DNA of 64,000 bases from Dimorphilus gyrociliatus. Lineage: Eukaryota > Animalia > Annelida. The translations under genes and the position numbers were made by a program. Positions 39,729 to 52,566 of the stretch are shown here, piece by piece. Position 1 is the first letter of the stretch; each line of letters begins with the position of its first letter. The notes below the pieces were generated by a model. It worked only from the letters and a program-made list of their open reading frames with translations, did not search any database and had not been told where the DNA came from. Where the stretch lies: NCBI GenBank assembly GCA_904063045.1, contig CAJFCJ010000010.1:1612001-1676000 (forward strand). The letters are read 5' to 3'.

Positions 39729-40781
39729 TCAATTCGATTGAAATGAAGATGATATTTCTCCAGTTGAACGTCGATTCTTTGAAAATAATTTTTTGAGTTC
39801 AATTCGAAATTTCGATCCAGTTAAGGTGTAAATAAAAAAGTTTGCGCAATTATTGGTGGCAGATAAGGCTCTTAATGAACGTCCCAAAATATATATTGTA
39901 TTGCTTTCCTGAGTGGTTGCCGTGTCCCAAAATCCATAAAAATGAACAAATAATAAAGTTATACAAATCGGTAATGTTGATATTATAAAATATGTTGAGA
40001 TAAATATTAAGGTTAAAGTCATTGTCGTATTATTTTTATTGGCTTTAGAAGAATCCGAAGTTAGAGTTTTCCTTACTTTTATTGCTCTTGAAAAATTGAT
40101 TAAAATTGAAACATTGACAATAATCATAATGAACGAAGGTATCAATGAAAATATTAAACCATCCATTGGTAAAGTAATGTCGTATAGGATGAAAGCATTC
40201 AATTTCTTCTTACTCGTACACAATAGTAATGAATTCCATTTGTTTAATGGTTCCACCCGAAAGCGTACAGTATCAATAAGATAATAGAAAGGATGATATA
40301 ATATGAGAAAGAATAGTATTATTAGGATACATGTAACCTTGGATCGAAACTTTGTAGAGATTAAATTGGCTTTTGTAGGGAGGAATATGTGTATACTTCG
40401 ATCTATTGTCATTGCAACAATCAGCCAAGAACAAACACTTCCGCTAGTGAATACTATTTGAGATATAAAACTACACATGAAATACCTTAAAACTGGTGCT
40501 GATAAATGATCTAAAAAGCCTAGAAAAGATGATATTGGAAAAATAACACAATTGGAGAACAAAGCAAAAGTATCAACAACAGCCAGAAATCTTATATAAA
40601 TCGACATTGTTGTTCCATTCATTGAGTTTTTACTGAAGATAATAAAACTTAGAATATTACCAATTGTACCAATGATAAATAGAATGCCAGATAAAACAGC
40701 CACACTTATATTGACATCCTTCGCTTCAGGAAAGAGAATTTTAGGAGGTAAAAACAAGGTTTTATTTAAACTGCTATTCAT
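39729..40781 (-). CDS. Intronless class A GPCR (FMRFamide-receptor-like/orphan clade), 350 aa
   Basis: Seven hydrophobic segments; TM1 GN, TM2 LAVVD, TM3 MTIDRS, TM7 NNCANFFIY, helix 8 GSKFRIE, TM3/ECL2 Cys pair. Confidence 0.9.
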   Translation of the reverse strand: MNSSLNKTLFLPPKILFPEAKDVNISVAVLSGILFIIGTIGNILSFIIFSKNSMNGTTMSIYIRFLAVVDTFALFSNCVIFPISSFLGFLDHLSAPVLRYFMCSFISQIVFTSGSVCSWLIVAMTIDRSIHIFLPTKANLISTKFRSKVTCILIILFFLILYHPFYYLIDTVRFRVEPLNKWNSLLLCTSKKKLNAFILYDITLPMDGLIFSLIPSFIMIIVNVSILINFSRAIKVRKTLTSDSSKANKNNTTMTLTLIFISTYFIISTLPICITLLFVHFYGFWDTATTQESNTIYILGRSLRALSATNNCANFFIYTLTGSKFRIELKKLFSKNRRSTGEISSSFQSN

Positions 40782-41321
40782 TTTTTGTTGCTTTAAATGT
40801 TTTTACTGTTTATTTCAAAAATCTATATGGCTTTATATAACATTTTATAGTCTTTTGATTTTAATTAACCGCAGGCGTTAGCTAACTCTTTTGCACGATC
40901 TTCCTTTCTTCTCTTTTATGAAAAAGAATATGTAATTAAGAGGATATATACGAACTTATAATGCAGAGAAACATATCCTCAAACATAAATTGCCCTGAGG
41001 GAATGGGTAAGGAAGAGGGAGAGTATAAGAGTATAAAATTTTCCTCCTGTTCTTTACGCTCTATAATGAATCTTATGTGACGTAAACGAATTTGTTAGGA
41101 CTTCTTTTTCTTTCCAAGTTTATCTAAATAGAGAGAAGGTAGGAAAATTGGTTGGGACGGTTGATTGAAATATATAGGATAAGAAAGTACATTCTCTGAC
41201 AGACCTTTTATTTATTAAGAAAGTCTAACAACTGGGAAAAATATATAGATACATAAATATATTTTTCCCTCCATTTGTCTCATTTGATTTGTCTGCTTAT
41301 CATAAAACACTTTCTTCTTGT

Positions 41322-41346
41322 TTCTTCTTCTTCTTCTTCTTCTTCT
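41322..41346 (+). repeat. (TTC)n tract forming a polypyrimidine tract before an AG (41353-41354) upstream of GPCR 2
   Basis: Direct reading; acceptor-like ttcttag 16 nt before the ATG. Confidence 0.8.
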
Positions 41347-41369
41347 ATTCTTAGCTGAATGTCCAAGAT

Positions 41370-42452
41370 ATGAATAATACAAATTTCTCTATAATTGATA
41401 ATTTTACATCGACCGTTAAACAAGATGAAGAAGTAATATTTCCAGAAGCGAAATATGTCGTTATTGGCTTAACAATATTTTCTATTAGCATATTTAATAT
41501 TGGACTTGTTGGAAATATCTTCAGTTTTATAGTCTATAATAAGTCATCAATGAATATTACTACCTGGTCTATATACGTAAGATATTTAGCAATATGGGAT
41601 TCAATTAATTTAGTTTTTAATTTATTGCTACCTACAATAAGACTTTATCTTGGCTTTTTAAATTTTTCACAAGTCATTCTATTATATTTTCCTTGCACAA
41701 TAACCTTATACGGAGCATACTTGAGTTATGGAATAAGCAGCTGGACCATTATTATGATGACACTTGACAGAAGTATCCATGTTTTCCTTCCGACAAAAGC
41801 TAATACTATTTGCACAAAGTTTAGATCAAAAACTATATGTATAACTATTAGCGCCATTTTAATACTTTTTTATCATTCAATACTCTACTCATTCGATAGG
41901 GTAAAACTTCAAATTCATGAAAATAATCCTTGGAACATAGCTATTAACTGTAAAGCAAAAACACCTGTTTTTCATTTTCTAATTTACAGAGTATATTCAA
42001 CAGTGGATACTTTCATTTCAACCGCTTTAACAGCACTTTTAACTTTTTTCATAAATATGGTAATGGCTATTGGTCTTTTTAGATCAAGAGTGAAAAGGAG
42101 AGCATTAATACAATCTAATAATATAAACAATATGAAATCTAATAAGAAAACAATAACTCTACTATTAATATCAATGTATTTTATAATTTCAACTGGTCCC
42201 TATACTATTTTAATAGTATTAATTCAGAATAGAGGATACTGGGAAAATGGTAGCGATGATGAGTTTAAAAAGTTAACAATATTGTCTCAATCATTAGCTT
42301 TTCTAGCAGCGACAAACAGCGCCATTAATTTTTATTTCTATATTTCAACTGGTGTGAAATTCCGTAAAGAATTTAATAAGCTGATTGGAAGGAAAAGTAT
42401 CAGAAGTAAAGAAGAATCGTACCAGTCAAAATCGTATTTGACGAATAGTTGA
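41370..42452 (+). CDS. Intronless class A GPCR (FMRFamide-receptor-like/orphan clade), 360 aa
   Basis: FPEAK N-terminal motif, GN, LAIWD, MTLDRS, TNSAINFYFY, GVKFRKE. Paralogue of both flanking GPCRs. Confidence 0.9.
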   Translation: MNNTNFSIIDNFTSTVKQDEEVIFPEAKYVVIGLTIFSISIFNIGLVGNIFSFIVYNKSSMNITTWSIYVRYLAIWDSINLVFNLLLPTIRLYLGFLNFSQVILLYFPCTITLYGAYLSYGISSWTIIMMTLDRSIHVFLPTKANTICTKFRSKTICITISAILILFYHSILYSFDRVKLQIHENNPWNIAINCKAKTPVFHFLIYRVYSTVDTFISTALTALLTFFINMVMAIGLFRSRVKRRALIQSNNINNMKSNKKTITLLLISMYFIISTGPYTILIVLIQNRGYWENGSDDEFKKLTILSQSLAFLAATNSAINFYFYISTGVKFRKEFNKLIGRKSIRSKEESYQSKSYLTNS

Positions 42453-42475
42453 ATAGAATATTTTTGAACTTAACT

Positions 42476-42503
42476 TTCTCTCTTTCTCTCTCTCTCTCTC
42501 TCT
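42476..42503 (+). repeat. (CT)n microsatellite filling the GPCR2-GPCR3 spacer
   Basis: Direct reading. Confidence 0.9.
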
Positions 42504-42508
42504 ACTCT

Positions 42509-43558
42509 ATGAAAATGAATAATGTAACGAAATCTCCATCTAATACAGATCTTATATTTCCAGAAGCTAAAAATTTTGGAATATCATTAATAACTTTTTC
42601 TTTCTTAATTCTAATACTTGGAACGATTGGCAATATTCTTAGCTTTAAAGTTTTCAGTAAAGAATCAATGAATAAAAATACATTTTCCGTATTCGTTAGA
42701 TTCCTGGCTGTTGTGGATACTGGAGTATTAATATTTACTGTTCTATTTGGTTGTCAAATGCTACTTGGATTCTTCTATGTACATAAATTGGTAATAACTT
42801 ATTTTTTTTGCGCAACAACCTACTATGGTCAGTTTATGCTTGGACATTCGTCCAGTTGGTTAGTTGTAGCTATGACAATAGATCGAAGTATTCACGTACT
42901 CTATCCAACCACATCTAAAACTATATCAACAAAATATCGAGCCAAAGCTATTTGTACTTGTATTATTGTCTTTTTCTCGTTACTTTATATTTTCTTCTTT
43001 TACGCTTTTAGTTCAGCGAATATAACAGTCCAACCCAATAATGAATGGTCCGCTACATTATATTGTGTGGGTAGAGATGAGGGATTTGAATATTTTTTAT
43101 ATCAGTATGTCGGATTCTTTGACGTTCTGGCTTACACCCTTATACCTTCAATAATAATTGCCATTTTTAATATTCTAATCATAAATACATTGATAAAAGC
43201 AAGAAAAAGGAGAAAGACAATGACTCAAGATAAACTAAAGAGCGACAGAAAATCAAATCAGATGACAATAATGCTTGTCTTTGTTTCAACCTATCTAATG
43301 ATTGCTACCTTGCCAGTTGGAATACTATCAAGGTATCTACAACAAAATGAAACTTGGAAATATGGTTCTATTGAAATAGTAAATAAATTGATAATAATCA
43401 CTAGAATTTTAAATATGTTTGCAGCCACGAATAGCGCAATTAATTTTTATATTTATTTTGCAAGTGGTGGGAAATTTAGAAGAGAGGTTTATTTGCTTTT
43501 TGATAATAAGAAAACGAAAGAAACATTTACAAGCATCTCATCTATATCATCAAAATGA
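42509..43558 (+). CDS. Intronless class A GPCR (FMRFamide-receptor-like/orphan clade), 349 aa
   Basis: First ATG at 42509 (MKMNNVT); the ORF track begins at a TTG at 42449 and translates a (CT)n tract. FPEAK, GN, LAVVD, MTIDRS, TNSAINFYIY, GGKFRRE. Confidence 0.9.
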   Translation: MKMNNVTKSPSNTDLIFPEAKNFGISLITFSFLILILGTIGNILSFKVFSKESMNKNTFSVFVRFLAVVDTGVLIFTVLFGCQMLLGFFYVHKLVITYFFCATTYYGQFMLGHSSSWLVVAMTIDRSIHVLYPTTSKTISTKYRAKAICTCIIVFFSLLYIFFFYAFSSANITVQPNNEWSATLYCVGRDEGFEYFLYQYVGFFDVLAYTLIPSIIIAIFNILIINTLIKARKRRKTMTQDKLKSDRKSNQMTIMLVFVSTYLMIATLPVGILSRYLQQNETWKYGSIEIVNKLIIITRILNMFAATNSAINFYIYFASGGKFRREVYLLFDNKKTKETFTSISSISSK

Positions 43559-46500
43559 AATTATTTGTATTGTAACATAAATATTTGCATACTCTATTCA
43601 TGTATATAAACAGGTTTACAGTATACATTCACTTTGTTTGTCATTGTAATGCTATTGTAATTTGTAACATGGAATAGAAAGAGCTAGAAAAGGATTACAA
43701 GTATATTTCTTTGTTTTAATCAAGTTTTAGCAAAGTAAACTTAATTTTGGCACTTAATATTTTTTAATATGGGGAATAGACAGTTGTTGAAATTGTAATT
43801 GATTGATCTTAGTTGTATTTAATATATAATATATTAGAATAGATTGGACTTAATCATTGACTTATACAATATATACATATAGGAATAAAATCTAAAATTA
43901 GAATATGTACTATAAGTTTGCCACTAAATCTCTTGCACTAGAGCTATATATAAAAAGAAATATTACGAAATAATCATTACAATATGGATTATTTCTAAAA
44001 ATACATCATCTTAAATACCTATGACTTGATATCTTTGATATCTTTTTCTTTATTAGGATAGTGAAGAGTTTATTACATATAATTAAGACATATTATTGTA
44101 TTCGTAAAAAAAAAAGGACAATAATAGACAAATATTACTCTTTTCTTATCAGCTATCTCGTGCTAATTATCATTTAATTGTATTTTTCCTCCTTATTTCC
44201 TCAACTTTTACTTATCTCGATTAATTTTTAGCATGATACATTAATTTGTTATTTGTAATACTTCTCTTTTCTATATTATCTTTTCAATGCTGTAAGAGTA
44301 TAAGATGAAATAAAATTAAAAATTCGGTTTTTCTGTAAGAATAGTTTCGTAAAGGTGTCCAAGAATAGAAACTACTTTACATGATAAACTTAAAAGATAA
44401 ATAGAATTTAATAGAGGTTGCAAAGAAGAAGAAAACTAGGTTTCGCTTTTTTTTAGTAACTCTAAATTAATAAAGAAAGCACTGGAAAAAGGAAAGAGAT
44501 GTGGAAAATAAGTCTAAATTTTACATAAAAAAGCACGTTTACTTTTTGAAAGCTATTTCCGAGAAATAATTACTACAATTTGCTGATTGGCTAACAAAAA
44601 CTGTGAGATTTCATAGTCTGTTGTTAATTTTCACTAACTTTATAGATTAATGAAATGCTGTATACGGTATTCTAAATATATATAAACAACGATAGACTGC
44701 TTTTATTTAACAAATGATGATTTTCGCAAATTTCTAACATCCGTTTATTATTAAAATACAACTATGTTCTTTTGTTTTCCATACTAGATAATTTTTTACT
44801 TGATATCCTATTCCAATCGGTATTTGTTTTGTTGGAGAGAGAGCAAGTGTAGTTTAGTGATTTAATTGGAGCGAATACCAAGTATAGTATGACGTAGTTG
44901 TAATCAGTCCATCCGTAGTTTATCTTATCAATATGTCTATATTAAGAAAAATTTACAGAGAATAGGAAAAAGGAGAAAGAGTGTGTGTGACCGTGTCTAT
45001 TATTATTATATTTAGATGAGAGGGTGCGTGAGCAGAGGACGGAGTGAGTGAATGAGTGAGTAGTGAATATGAATTAGTGAAGAGACTGAAATGGAAAGAG
45101 AGATACATAGAGATAGAAGTCGAGATAGGAAGAAAACATGGGAGGAGGGAAATTCACAGATAGAAATCAAAATGAACTATCAAACGAATAAATCAGTATT
45201 TAAGATTAAAAGTAGTTAAAAATTTTGCATTGAATACACCAATTACATTTACTAAGTAGAACAATGAAATAGATACCAACACACTCTAATTACATATATA
45301 TATATAAATTTATATATTTTTATAAATAGTACGTAAGGAGAAAAACTAGGAAAGGGGTGGATAGGTGGGCGTTATATCTTGACCGAATTTATGTTATAGC
45401 TTGCCCTTCGTTTTCTCTGTTATAATAAGAAATATTATAATAATTTAATAATATAATTACCATTAAGGATAGCTATATTACACGGTATATATATATATAT
45501 ACATCTAAATTATATAGAATTAATAGCTATAGGCTGTTTTTAAGAAATGATTTTATATTACTAAATATATACACGTATTTAGGAGAAGACAGTATTTGCA
45601 TGTGAAAATTCAATTTAGAGAAATACTTCTTTTCTCCAACAAAATCAATAGTCAAATAATCTAAGAGTAGCAAATATATAATAGGCATATTAGTGCTTGA
45701 ATTAAATTAGGTTAATTTTTAAGATTACTATTCGATACGATCAAAGTACTCTTTCTCTCTTTTGACGGTAGATGGCATTTCAATTTTGAAATATATATAT
45801 ACTGTATATATAGATAAAAATATTTATGTAAATGTACTCCAGTTTTATAGAAAAATAACAATACGATATTCAATTAAAATCCATTAGAGAAAAAGAGTTT
45901 AAACTTCTCTTTTAAATACTAGAAATAAGAATTTTCTTGACCTAAAAAAAATTCTAAACTTGTTGTATTTTTAAAGATTGAATACAATACTTAAATTCAT
46001 TACGCATAGTGTTATATTTATGCGAAAGTATAATGTATATGCATATTACAATGTTAGTAAATGGTGAGTTGTTGTTTAAAGAGGGCTGGAAAAAAATTGT
46101 ATAGGTGTATATCTATTACAAAATAAACAGAAAACAGTCTAGTCTATTGATACGAAAAACATATACATTACGAATGCTTTGACTCTTTTTTTTGTTGGTG
46201 TAAAACTTACTGCCTGTTAACACAGTTTTTTTTTTATAATGATTTAACTCAAGTAGATGTTTGTTTTTTACTCCCTTTTCCAAATAGACGATATATAAGT
46301 CAATATGAAAATAGTCTAAAGTAAGCATTAACATATAATAAATTCTCCCAAATCTGTACAACAGTGTTTATTCGGTTTATGCTTCAGCTAAATTAAAAAG
46401 TAAATATTGAATTTTCTCAGATTTATTTCTATTGTTTTATGAATTACTGAAGTTTTATTTGGAAAACTCTAGAAGGATAACAATAAATTTCGAATTAAAA

Positions 46501-46559
46501 TCGAGAAATGCCAAATTGGATAAGAGGAAACGGAAACGCCCAAAGCATTTGTATTAAGT

Positions 46560-46700
46560 ATGATGATTGGCTGATATTAGAATCACTTCACCAATGAACG
46601 ACCGGAAAACTTTTTGCGAAAAAAATATAAACTGTCATGGCGAATGCGATGCAAATCTTCGATAGGACTCATGGATTGGTAATCATTTTTTATAATTATA
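46560..46700 (+). promoter_or_regulatory. Probable RERE promoter (CCAAT boxes, ETS-like site)
   Basis: GATTGG (twice), CCAAT and ACCGGAA cluster in a locally GC-richer stretch ~700 bp upstream of the first RERE coding exon. Confidence 0.35.
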
Positions 46701-47426
46701 TCCGTGTTTTTTTTAAATTATATATTCATCGAGTTAATAACCGAGCTCATATATTCGCTGTCCATTAATTTATCAGAGCGGACAGTTTGCCCGATTCCGT
46801 ATAAAACGAATTTTTATCACCCGGTTCAGCATCTTTGTGTAGTATGCTGAATAAATTTATAAATCGTACAATCTGTGAAGCTTAGACATTTAAGAAGCAT
46901 AGTTACCTTAATACTTACTAAATTTAGGGCTAAAGAGAATTGTTTTTTTTACGTGAAATTATATAATAACGTGTGAGAATAGTCGTTGACTAATTGGCAG
47001 TTGGAAGAGTAAACAAAATAAAAAGAGGATTAAAATTGTGTATATACCTTGGCAAGTGTACTATTACAAATTCATGCCTTAACTGTCAACCTGCAGGAAG
47101 ATTTAATAAAAGAAAGCGAAAGACTTCAAAAACGTTCTGCTTATCTAAATAACAAATCGGAGTTCAAACATAACACGCCTGCTAACGATTTATTGATAAT
47201 GTATTTTTTTATCTGATTGATGCATACTCGATTTTTCTCTTTAAAAAGGTTCTTTAAGAGCCTTACTCAAATATTAGTAAAGTAGATAAATTGTAGTTGA
47301 CAGATCGATTGCCGAATAATGAAATACGTAAAGTAGATTTATCGCACTTTATTTAAAAATTTTTCTCTTATCTTTTTAGAGTAACTAACAGAAGGGAAAA
47401 GATCATCGACATCGAAATTCAGCACC

Positions 47427-50400
47427 GTGGCTTCTACACAGGGTGAAATACGTGTAGGTTAGTATATATATATATATATATATATATACTGTATATAAAA
47501 AACTGTATCATCTATATTATATACTGCATGCATTACACCTGTCTAACCTCCTTATTGTTCGCAAAGTAATACGCCTCTCCAATTTTTTTTCCTGTTATTA
47601 TCTAAATCATATCTCTTTAATCATGTAGTTATCACTACTTTTTTTACCATTAACATCAAATACATACTATTAATCTTACATTTCTAATCAAGCATTACTT
47701 TTAACCTACGTTATTTTTATTAGCGATAATCCGTTTACTAAGAAAAACTATCAATAAGACAGTTTGAATAATAGATATTAGTAGCATAATCCTCGTGGAA
47801 TTGTTTAGTCGTAAAGGTATTTTAAAGATAAATTAGTCTTTTCAGAAATCTTGTTTTTGTCCTATACAGTTCTAGTTTTTTTTTTTATATAATATGGATT
47901 TCTTCTCTTCCTCTCGCTCTCTCTATTGTTTTTGTTTTTTTACCAATAATAAAGATCCGAGTTTGTGTAATCTTTCTAATAATACCCTTTTTATTTAGCG
48001 ATATTTATCTTTTGAAAACTATCTTGATCTATCTATCTATCTATCCATCAAGCTATCTTTATCTTTTAGCACACCACTACTATACCTCTTTCACACCATC
48101 TAACTTACCCCCTGCCCCTCTTCCATACATTAAGCTGATACGCCCTAAAAAGAACGAATTCTTTTTTTTAGTCGTGTTCTTACACTTTGAAACTTTATAT
48201 CCAATAAAGCAAAACAATCAACTAGAAAATTTTTGTCGACCTTTATTCCCAATATACTAGCCCTTTCTTGACCTCTTCTTTTTATTTTTCTTTTTTAAAC
48301 GATACGATACGGGGTCAAAGATGACTTTTTTGTACGCCCGATTTATTTTCATAAAAAGCCGAGAAGAAACCCGCACCTGTCAACTGGCAAAATAACCTCT
48401 ATTAAATGATTTATTTTTTTTTTTACACCTTTTTAAATCCGATAGGGCGTTAAGTCGAATATTAAATTCTGCATTTATGATAATATCCCAAGATAAATTT
48501 TTTGTTGTTGCCGTGTCAATTAATCAATTCGTGACTTTAAAATATGTTATTTTTTTTTTAAATCAATTTTTAGGACCTGGTCACCAAGCTAGGCTTCCGG
48601 AATGCAATCGTTTAGAGTATGATGACGAAAAACCAAGAGAAAGCCTAAGATGGGTTCCATCTTCGATATCCGATCAAGATTTAATCATGTATCTGAGGGC
48701 AGCCAGGTCAATGGCGTTCTTTGTAGGAATGTGCGACCCCGGCTCAGGGGATGACGGCAGCCAGGCAGCTTCTCAAGATAGTACGACAGTTAATGCTCTC
48801 GAGATAGTAATTATACCTTTTACTTTCCTTCTACTTAACCCATGCATCATAACTTATCCCCCCTTGTTTCGTTATTCTAATATAATATTTTTGGAATTTT
48901 GCCAGCTGCACGATTGTAATTACAACAAAGGTGAAGCTTTACAAGTATTGGTCAAGTGTCCAGTTCCAATCAATATAGAACAGAAGTGGAATGAGGAAGA
49001 AACGGTAAATAGACTCAATTAAAATCTAAATTTCACTAGGAAAGAAATAAGCCTACTAATTATCTTCAATTATCGTTATTTATGAATAAGAAACCTAACA
49101 AAAATACGCCACAAAAACCTAAATTAAAAAGCTTTCGAAAACGTCTCGACTTAGATATTACGTAATCGGCATTAAAAAAAATGTTTTAAATAGAGAATCG
49201 TGGGAGATTTGTTTTTTTCTTACGTAATCTTGCACTTGTGCCTTAAATTTACGGCTCTTTTTATTATTATTCTTTGTTTCTTTATTTCTTTTTATCGTTT
49301 CATCCGTAAGTTGATATCATAAATTTTTCTCTTTGTCTTCTTACTTCCTATAAGTTGTAAGGAAAAAAAATATTAGTAAAAGAAAATTATACGTGCTCTC
49401 TGTGTGGTGTTTAGAATCGGTATAAGACAAACGCCGCGCATGCGTAGTCAATTACTGTGTTAACCTCTCCGGTTCGTTTTTTATCCCATATTCAAAAGAT
49501 AACTTAGCATTTATGACCTATACATAATATCAATACTCGTCATTATTGTCTCTTCTATTTATATTTTTATCAATCCATTCGTTCCGCCCTCTCTCCCTCT
49601 CCCTCTTTCTCTTTTCTTTAATATATAATTATCTATACTGTATAATCGTATATATTTAAAAACACACATAGCCAGAATGACTAATTAAAAGGCCCGTAAT
49701 TTCATTCTCTATAATTTAATATTTAGGCCTACAAATCTATGTAAGTGAGTAAAGATCGGAAAGAAAGAAAAGATTAAAAAAATCAATTTCTTTCTTTTAG
49801 AATGTAAAGCCTTATTATACTTATGACCTACTTACATACTGAATAGAAAAAATTTACACGTACGAATTCTATCTTCAACAAAGATCTGTCTTCCATTTTT
49901 GTGGTTTTTTTAAAGCGTTGTAAACGCTCTATCCCTTGTAGAATACGTCATAGGAAACAAGATAAATAGGATGGATTAAAATATTCCTTTTTCCTTTATA
50001 GAAGAGATTCTCGAAGGGATTGAGACAATACGGAAAGAATTTCTTCAAGATCCGAAAGGAGCTACTTTCTCATAAAGAGGTCACCGATTTGGTTGAATAT
50101 TATTATATTTGGAAGAAAACTCAGGCTGCCAATAATCTCAGACCGACTAGACGTAGAGTTAGTCAAAAGAAAAGTCAGAGAACTCCTAGAACTCCTAATC
50201 CTGAAGAAGAGGAGGGCGAAGAAGCTAGTAGTTCGGGCGAAAGCGACGAAGAAGATAGCGACGGTTTAGTTTCTCATTGTTCAAACTGCTTTGCTTCATC
50301 AATAAGTTCAGATTCGCAAAGTTGTTCGAAAGGTTTATTGTGTGGTCTGTGCTTTGATCATTGGAAGAAATTTGGAACAGATCGACCGACCGATAGGAAT

Positions 50401-52566
50401 AAGGAACCACCTTATTTCGATCAAGAGCAAAAGACTTCTGCGTCTACCAACGGCACTAGTAGTACTGAAGGTGCAGAAGAAAGTGAGGGAGCAGACGCGG
50501 ACGTAGAGGAAGCGAATAACGAGGAGAACGATAACGACTCCTATTGTTCATCGACGTGTTCGACCCCTATACCTAATCCACCACAGATTGTTTCATCAGT
50601 TCCCATATGTTCTACTCCTATGAAAGCCCCTCAATTGACTTCATCATCATCAGCGTCAAGTTCGGGTTCTAGTTCTAGTAGTTCTAGTTCAAGTAGTTCT
50701 AGTTCAGAGGCTCATACAGAAGAAGAAGGCCATATATCTCCCCCTCCCCAACTCGCAGCTGTTCCACCTCCGAAACCTCAAATCCTAACGCCAACCCCTC
50801 ATAGACCAGAACCATTCATCGTGAAAACAGAAAAACCAGACGAAGTAGGCGGACTAGCTGGAGAATCCAAGCATCGTCCTGTATTAGCTGTGCCTCCCGT
50901 CCAACAGCAGCAGCAACCACAACCACCTCCTTTAATTTCCTCACATATCAAGGAGGAATTGAAGGATCCTGCAGACATGACCATGGCTTCTCTAAGCCAT
51001 CAAGGAGGCCATAGTAATCCGCCTCCGCCGGGTCCTCCACCACCATTACGGCCTTTACATCATGTAAAATCGGAATTGGAGTCTGAAGAAGATGAAGCTA
51101 ATTCAACAGTTCAATCAGACGTTTGTGAAGATAGAGATGCTCAAGAAGTATCAATAGTTTTGAAGGAAACCAAAAATGCGATTCTTATGAAATATCTAGA
51201 TAGAGGAGGAAATTCCTGTTCAAGGACGGATATTGGGTTCCGCATTAAGCCTGGTTCAAATTTCGCGTTGAAGAAATCATCAAACAGCGAAAAGAGATCG
51301 TCGACTGGCAAAACACCAACAATTGTACCCGTTAAGGAGGACAAAACGAAAATGATTCCCGAGAGTGGAAAAACAGCCGACGCTCAAATAATGTCGCATA
51401 TTGGACAACCAACTCTACCAACTGCGTTCGAAAGAAACCCGAGATTCTTAGGAACAGATACCCCAGCTCTTTCCCAACTTAGAGCTTACAGTGATAGAGC
51501 TCACGCTTTGGGCTTGGGTCATACAGTACCTACTAGTTTGGCTTATAGCGGGGCATTGGTGCCAACCTCGGATCCCCTCCATCAGAGAACCCTCTTTCAG
51601 CATCCTACACCAACAAGTAGGGATAGACTGGAAGCTGAATTACTTAGGGATAAACAGGAAAGGGATGCAAGGGAAAGGGAGATGAGGGAAAGAGAATTAA
51701 GAGATTTTGAATTGCAAGAAAAGATGAAGAGAGAATTAGAAATGAAGCCGCAAGCCATACCAACGGGTGACGCTCACCTATTGCAACTTCAAAGAGAATA
51801 CGCTCTTAGGGGATTAGCTTTTCCGCCTCATTTATCCGCCTTATCCGGATCTGGATTGCCTACTCCACCCCATTTGCCCGGAATCTACCCTCCGGCTTCT
51901 CTAGCAAGCGATCTGATACACAGAGAACGGGAAATGAGAGAAAGAGCATTGGGTAAGTGTTATGTAATGATGTATACAAATCGGATGATCCCAATCCCAC
52001 CAGTGACAAAGAGTTTATTATAGCTGTGATCGAGTGACATAAGATAAGCTAAGCTTGTTGAATTATCTAGTATTTTTTCCGATTTTACACCTTTTACCTT
52101 ATTTAAACATATGCATTAAAAGTATAGATAATGAAGCATATCTTCTCCCTCAACAGCCGAGAGATTTCAAGCCGAGAGAGCAATGGCCTTTGCAAACGAT
52201 CCCGTTGCCCGATTACAAATGGCATCCGCTGTACACGCACATACTCATGCTCATGCTCATACTCATTATCACCTTCATCAGCCGGACGGTACTCCCACTA
52301 ATCCTGGTTCTTTGCACGGAGCTCCGCAACTTCCTTCGCACTTAGCGCCTTATCAACCGCCAACTTCAATGGCCAGCAGCCTTCCTTACGCCGGCCACGC
52401 AGCTTTACTAGAGAGAGATACTCTTCTACAAAGGGAGCTATTGGCCAGACAAGCGGGCGCAGATCATTTAATCGCACAACAGCAACACGCGCTACATCAT
52501 GATGCCCTTATGAGAGAGCAATTACTACAGCGGGAGCGTTTAGGCGTACATATTCCACCTCATTAA
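47427..52566 (+). CDS. RERE: Atrophin/RERE (ELM2 + SANT + GATA-like finger + RE repeats), 5 coding exons, ~907 aa; start codon proposed as GTG
   Basis: Exons 47427-47457, 48574-48806, 48906-49004, 50002-51952, 52157-52566 join in frame. [10 protein letters not shown]|[39 protein letters not shown]...YYYIWKK (SANT), C-x2-C-x17-C-x2-[29 protein letters not shown]. Gene identity is secure; the start position is a hypothesis. Confidence 0.9.
47463..47488. repeat. (TA)n microsatellite at the start of RERE intron 1
   Basis: Direct reading; followed by CTGTATATA. Confidence 0.9.

Follow-up and report, generated by a model that had tools for sequence, protein, structure and literature searches.

The Atrophin/RERE co-repressor of the annelid Dimorphilus gyrociliatus, encoded by plus-strand exons across 47380-52566 of a 64,000-nucleotide stretch of DNA (the window; G000:C10:1612001-1676000, in a genome of 78 Mb), probably begins at a GUG codon at position 47427. 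Initiation at this codon is the most likely start because the mature messenger RNA (mRNA) carries no usable AUG ahead of the conserved first domain of the protein. Non-AUG initiation had been proposed in a first-pass annotation of the window, and the proposal is now supported by the closure of the upstream frames, by the conservation of the start context, by coding constraint that sets in from the GTG, and by the occurrence of an ATG at the same codon in other animals.

The window gene is one of three Atrophin/RERE genes in D. gyrociliatus and is devoid of a BAH domain. The closest named relatives are 'grunge' and RERE, and 106 relatives come up at E ≤ 1e-10. Pfam searches, carried out exon by exon as was the RNA folding, detect the ELM2 domain (PF01448, E 6.6e-9, above the cut-off), a histone-deacetylase-binding domain whose match begins with the GEIRVG..HQA.LP motif, and the Atrophin-1 region in the exon at 50020-52023 (PF03154, 33.2 bits versus a cut-off of 29.9). 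A SANT-like stretch and a CxxC..CxxC stretch are also visible in the sequence; neither gives a Pfam match at E ≤ 0.01 on a single exon, the domains being split by introns. Searching the whole genome with the BAH profile (PF01426) yields seven matches, none of which lies on the contig of the window (C10) or on the contig of its nearest paralogue (C7), and this absence corresponds to the fly-type Atrophin architecture.

The structure of the transcript was derived by comparing the stretch 43500-49100 with the contigs of four RNA runs (Logan), a comparison that reports presence and junctions, not levels. Run X1, a metatranscriptome, is letter-identical to the window, and run X3, from a related lineage, is 90-95% identical; letter differences within about 30 nucleotides (nt) of the end of a matching piece go unlisted, so the state of the GTG is unreadable in X3, and the TA repeat at 47453-47503 was masked. 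The junction joining 46678 to 47380 (GT..AG) is present in both contigs that cover the leader, one from X1 and one from X3, which run on into 48574-48806 and 48906-49004, while the junction joining 48806 to 48906 is present in X1, X6 and X2. A donor at 47457/GTTAGT and an acceptor at 48573 fit the contig pieces and the sequence, with two unplaced letters and an ambiguous 'tag', and a loose contig end past 49004 matches the beginning of exon 5 at 50002. In the X3 contig an Illumina adapter lies immediately 5' of 46644, and the X1 contig reaches no further 5' than 46650, so that the mRNA probably begins near 46644. Over 47379-47452 the X1 contig agrees with the window without a single difference or gap, so that neither the GTG nor the leader is to be explained by a misassembly or by RNA editing; the expressed sequence reads GTG, not ATG, at 47427.

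The start region itself conforms exactly to the first-pass description. The GTG occupies 47427-47429 within gcACC-GTG-G (-3 A, +4 G); a TAA at 47382-47384 closes the protein frame upstream of it; and the AG acceptor at 47378-47379 is preceded by a pyrimidine tract. As had been stated, no ATG intervenes between this TAA and the GTG, nor does one occur anywhere in exon 2 (47380-47457), and the GTG is the sole in-frame near-cognate codon between the TAA and the conserved Ala codon of ASTQ. Exon 1 holds four ATGs (46637, 46644, 46649 and 46671), the first of which has G at both -3 and +4, and splicing as observed (TTG/AGTAACTAAC) leaves none of the three frames open: reading from 46637 or 46649 ends at a TAA at 47386, and reading from 46644 or 46671 at a TGA built from 46677-46678 and 47380. 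The ATG at 47319, previously described as out of frame with every splice combination tried, sits inside the intron 46679-47379 and cannot be used. The next in-frame ATG lies, as had also been noted, deep in the ELM2 domain, at 48687-48689 (MYLRAARSM), near the end of the Pfam match. Of the two acceptors under consideration for exon 2, X1 and X3 use the one at 47379, and the one at 47391 occurs in neither contig; spliced from exon 1, the latter yields a TGA or the wrong frame. An upstream exon that would deliver an ATG in phase to 47391 did not emerge, since the exon found splices to 47379 and every frame stops at or just after the junction.

Other routes by which an AUG might reach the protein frame were likewise rejected. 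An upstream exon coding for BAH or another segment finds no counterpart, there being no BAH match on C10 or C7 and no spliced coverage among the RNA contigs in the 3.8 kb between the neighbouring G-protein-coupled receptor (GPCR) gene and exon 1. A spliced leader cannot supply the codon, because no trans-splicing is reported for D. gyrociliatus (PMC7854359). A candidate leader at 45791-45827, which has very high depth and recurs at the ends of many unrelated X3 and X6 contigs, proved to be a TA-rich simple repeat with many genomic copies. No Rfam family is matched in 46400-47600, and exon 2 of the window and C7 copies folds no better than shuffled sequences.

The paralogues repeat this arrangement. 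The C7 copy is located on the minus strand at about 3244500-3249630 and is annotated as DgyrCDS6434 (848 amino acids). It possesses the identical GCACCGTGGC (ACC-GTG-G) and an exon 2 without ATG, and its homologous exon 1, which is 76% identical, has as its last codon a TAG in the protein frame, so that the frame is closed by a stop different from that in the window. The public model of DgyrCDS6434 starts at the internal MYLRAARSM and appears to be short of 49 conserved in-frame N-terminal residues; given this starting point, the annotation pipeline found no ATG either. In the third ELM2-bearing, Atrophin-like copy (C13:446469-446717, minus strand), the sequence ..GGCAAG-CTG-GCG.. encodes KLASNIQGQIRVG and puts a CTG, flanked by A at -3 and G at +4, where the window copy has its GTG. 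No ATG precedes the start of ELM2 in this copy, whose exon structure is different in that RVG is followed by no intron; some 120 nt further 5' is a candidate exon 1 that contains the ATGGCAAA motif. The CTG and its context are retained on a contig (L015) that comes from a sister lineage and is 92% identical to the C13 copy. Across the three paralogues the near-cognate codon is GTG, GTG and CTG, and each has A at -3 and G at +4. Separately, DgyrCDS9347 (570 amino acids, without ELM2 or SANT) may be the annotated gene of which the C13 copy of ELM2 is part.

Whether orthologues keep GTG or ATG at this position had been proposed as a check, and the answer differs between copies and lineages: among the paralogues, GTG is kept in C7 and CTG is found in C13, and BAH-less orthologues elsewhere start with a true AUG at or next to the homologous codon. 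For example, genomic contigs of two other animals (L008 and L011) read ATG-GTT-TC.-AC.-CA., with the ATG at the homologous codon itself; the mosquito orthologue starts MATPPTEGEIRVG; and an orthologue on a metatranscriptome contig (L007, ENA) starts MSEGPAEGEIRIG after a 189-nt leader. The Atrophins of Lucilia cuprina and Stomoxys calcitrans start directly at the ELM2 motif, and the start given for Drosophila Atrophin in the first-pass annotation, almost at this position, is real for these two flies. Fly Atrophin/Grunge and BAH-less RERE resemble the worm protein in beginning at ELM2 and in having the Atrophin-1 region further on, with a SANT domain and a GATA-like finger (candidate stretches in the worm) in between; however, they use AUG, whereas of the three worm paralogues two have GUG and one has CUG. 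BAH-bearing orthologues (oyster, crustaceans, nemertean and vertebrates) carry the same ELM2 start motif, but internally, about 200-250 residues past the BAH domain, for which the contigs of the worm C10 and C7 copies carry no exon; the Val/Leu codon of the worm aligns with a conserved Leu in these proteins. In the L007 leader, a short out-of-frame upstream open reading frame (uORF; L007:162-200, ATG 162) overlaps the main ATG at 190, and uORFs may be widespread among Atrophin leaders.

Several points weigh against initiation at the GUG. Initiation at the codon itself is deduced from the genome and transcript contigs, the splicing of exon 1 to exon 2 in the C7 and C13 copies is predicted from homology, and the Leu/Val codon is an ancestral internal residue (RRL-ASTQ in BAH-bearing orthologues), the presence of which alone is no proof of a start. 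If the transcript were to start 5' of 46637, a uORF in strong context would precede a weak start codon, which would be an awkward design. Moreover, contigs drop rare variants, among which a minor AUG isoform could be hidden, and a spliced X6 contig with a depth of 444 starts exactly at 47406, X6 having no coverage of 47380-47405 or of exon 1; this start could represent a drop in coverage, a branch in the assembly graph or an internal transcript start, and the 5' part of the X6 transcript is unseen. A minor or stage-specific isoform might therefore supply an AUG and leave the GUG as an internal Val, either by splicing exon 1 to a weak AG at 47421-47422 or through an unseen upstream exon. Frame arithmetic over every AG between 47379 and 47426, combined with each of the four exon-1 ATGs, leaves this one pairing, donor 46678 with AG 47421-47422, that opens an AUG frame and keeps it in phase (from ATG 46644 or 46671, the latter giving MDCTVASTQ..). 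However, the isoform is absent from both leader-covering contigs, its acceptor has no pyrimidine tract, and in C7 the AG is replaced by GG and the ATG by CTCG, yet the N-terminus of the C7 protein is conserved. An additional upstream exon would have to be sought in the 3.8 kb without spliced coverage, on a contig with no BAH exon. Taken with these observations, an AUG-bearing isoform is unlikely.

Alternatively, translation could start at the first in-frame AUG, at 48687 (MYLRAARSM), and the stretch upstream would not be made; this is the only in-frame AUG, and the public model of the C7 paralogue begins there. Coding constraint 5' of this AUG argues strongly to the contrary. In the 46 codons compared between the GTG, itself excluded, and the first in-frame ATG, the window and C7 copies have a ratio of nonsynonymous to synonymous substitution rates (dN/dS) of 0.12 with a dS of about 1.2, the differences fall 5, 7 and 20 times on the first, second and third codon positions, and a single indel of 3 nt keeps the frame. 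On this alignment the 46 codons are under purifying selection, and they encode GEIRVG..HQA.LP, a motif shared across animal phyla and better conserved than the rest of ELM2 in every orthologue recovered. In addition, two out-of-frame AUGs (48602 and 48619) come first in exon 3, so that a start at 48687 is very improbable. The onset of the constraint can also be located, because the segment 47430-47457 differs from C7 by three synonymous changes and one Val/Ile change, whereas the leader from acceptor to GTG aligns poorly and measures 47 nt in the window versus 42 nt in C7. This 5-nt difference is not a multiple of three, and the leader is thus non-coding; in the 12 nt directly 5' of the GTG, 10 of 12 bases agree. 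By the same comparison, coding constraint starts at the GTG or a few bases before it. A dS of about 1.2 implies, in turn, that the C10/C7 duplication is old.

The upstream AUGs admit two interpretations, depending on where transcription starts. The ATGGCGAA motif of the candidate uORF at 46637 is conserved in C7; the RNA contigs reach no further 5' than 46644 (X3) and 46650 (X1), and it is uncertain whether the ATG at 46637 is included in the mRNA. If transcription starts near 46644, this ATG would belong to the promoter, and nothing but a cap-proximal AUG and the two-codon AUG-GAU-UGA would stand ahead of the GUG; if it starts further upstream, a 16-codon uORF in strong context would end 38 nt before the GUG (42 nt in C7). 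Recoding that fuses such an AUG-started uORF to the main frame, by stop read-through in C7 or by frameshifting in the window copy, is scarcely credible: the conserved ATGGCG reading frame of C7 does share the main frame and is split from it by one TAG only, but the uORF of the window is out of frame with all three frames stopped, its peptide is poorly conserved (the sister lineage of C13 has a stop after three codons), and exon 2 contains no significant RNA structure.

With initiation at the GUG, expression of the gene would proceed as follows. A short non-coding exon 1 (ending at 46678) would be spliced to exon 2 at 47380, giving a leader in which no AUG can be read into the protein frame; ribosomes scanning from the cap would then start on the GUG at 47427 with initiator Met-tRNA, aided by the Kozak-like ACC-GUG-G context, and the product would begin (M)ASTQGEIRV.. 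with a complete ELM2 domain. As to its history, the BAH exons may have been lost first, upon which an ancestral Leu CUG in good context would have become the start, as in the C13 copy, and the change from CUG to GUG would have preceded the duplication that gave C10 and C7. Near-cognate starts respond to the levels of eIF1 and eIF5, and the Atrophin start may share this sensitivity, as the first-pass annotation suggested. The upstream AUGs may act as uORFs, and dosage may be tuned through start-codon stringency. A broader proposal, in which the dinophilid Atrophin/RERE paralogues all rely on a near-cognate start after BAH loss (CUG, then GUG) behind a conserved ATGGCRAA element, and in which this arrangement would act as a translational rheostat that sets the co-repressor dose via eIF1/eIF5 stringency or reinitiation capacity, is speculative and rather doubtful at present.

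Table 1. Features of the Atrophin/RERE locus in the window (positions in window coordinates)
Feature	Position	Strand	Remarks
Promoter-like block: CCAAT (46591-46595) and ATATAAA motif (46625-46631)	46591-46631	+	Both kept in the alignment with the C7 paralogue; putative function
Candidate upstream open reading frame	46637-46678	+	ATG 46637 reads MANAMQIFDRTHGL, then SN, stop 47386-47388 after splicing
Exon 1, RNA-supported part (at least)	46644-46678	+	Non-coding for the main protein; donor TTG/GTAATC
Intron 1, GT..AG, 701 nt	46679-47379	+	RNA joint; contains ATG 47319
Intronic conserved block	47113-47235	+	78% identity with the C7 paralogue; three WGATAR motifs
Exon 2 (47380-47457), 5' leader part	47380-47426	+	47 nt, no ATG, no in-frame near-cognate codon
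Proposed GUG initiation codon, context AGCACC-GUG-G	47427-47429	+	Identical GTG in C7, CTG in C13; ATG in L008 and L011
First coding codons, ASTQGEIRV and first base of Gly (ELM2 start)	47430-47457	+	Donor G/GTTAGT
Exon 3, ELM2 core and RERE-specific segment	48574-48806	+	First in-frame ATG 48687-48689
Exon 4	48906-49004	+	RNA joints
Downstream exons (candidate SANT and GATA-like finger, Atrophin-1 region)	50002-52566	+	Boundaries past 50002 approximate

Beyond the start region, the conserved block of intron 1 lies about 200 nt 5' of exon 2 and aligns with G000:C7:3249027-3249146, the rest of the intron being unalignable. Three WGATAR motifs are kept within it (CTTATCT, TTGATAA and TTTATCTG); the block has no coverage among the RNA contigs and no match in Rfam. 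It is probably a shared enhancer or other regulatory element. At position 50011 the RNA differs between runs, with G in X1 and X3 and, as in the window, T in X6 (TTCGCG versus TTCTCG); the G changes Ser to Ala in KRF[S/A]KGLRQY, and the difference resembles a strain polymorphism. A cluster of three intronless genes for rhodopsin-type GPCRs of 350, 360 and 369 amino acids lies at 39729-43558, immediately 5' of the Atrophin gene; they match PF00001, one of them with an Srw-like match as well, and two read on the plus strand and the third on the minus strand.

The Atrophin start can be regarded as a new case within a known class of main open reading frames that depend on non-AUG initiation only, and it corrects the current annotation. 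The main frame of EIF4G2/DAP5 reportedly starts at GUG, and that of TEAD1 is said to start at AUU. The worm gene resembles genes of the EIF4G2/DAP5 type in having no AUG ahead of conserved coding sequence and a near-cognate codon in a strong Kozak-like context that is conserved among homologues, and in being prone to truncation at the first AUG by automatic annotation. It differs from them in belonging to another family, in being known from genome and transcript contigs alone, and in that its near-cognate start comes from one annelid lineage, relatives in other phyla having AUG in its place. In the portions of the literature returned by the search, no report links RERE/Atrophin with non-AUG initiation, and 'non-AUG' in papers on polyglutamine disease most likely refers to repeat-associated translation.

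To our knowledge, few animal main open reading frames depend wholly on a non-AUG start, and each of them is a natural sensor of initiation stringency. Annotation is affected at once: as publicly modelled, the protein of the C7 copy appears to miss its first 49 residues, including the conserved start of ELM2, and gene finders that require an ATG will repeat the same error elsewhere. The three paralogues and the AUG-using orthologues constitute ready-made comparisons for the study of such starts. If initiation at the GUG is true, the dosage of a chromatin co-repressor in D. gyrociliatus would be set at the level of translation.

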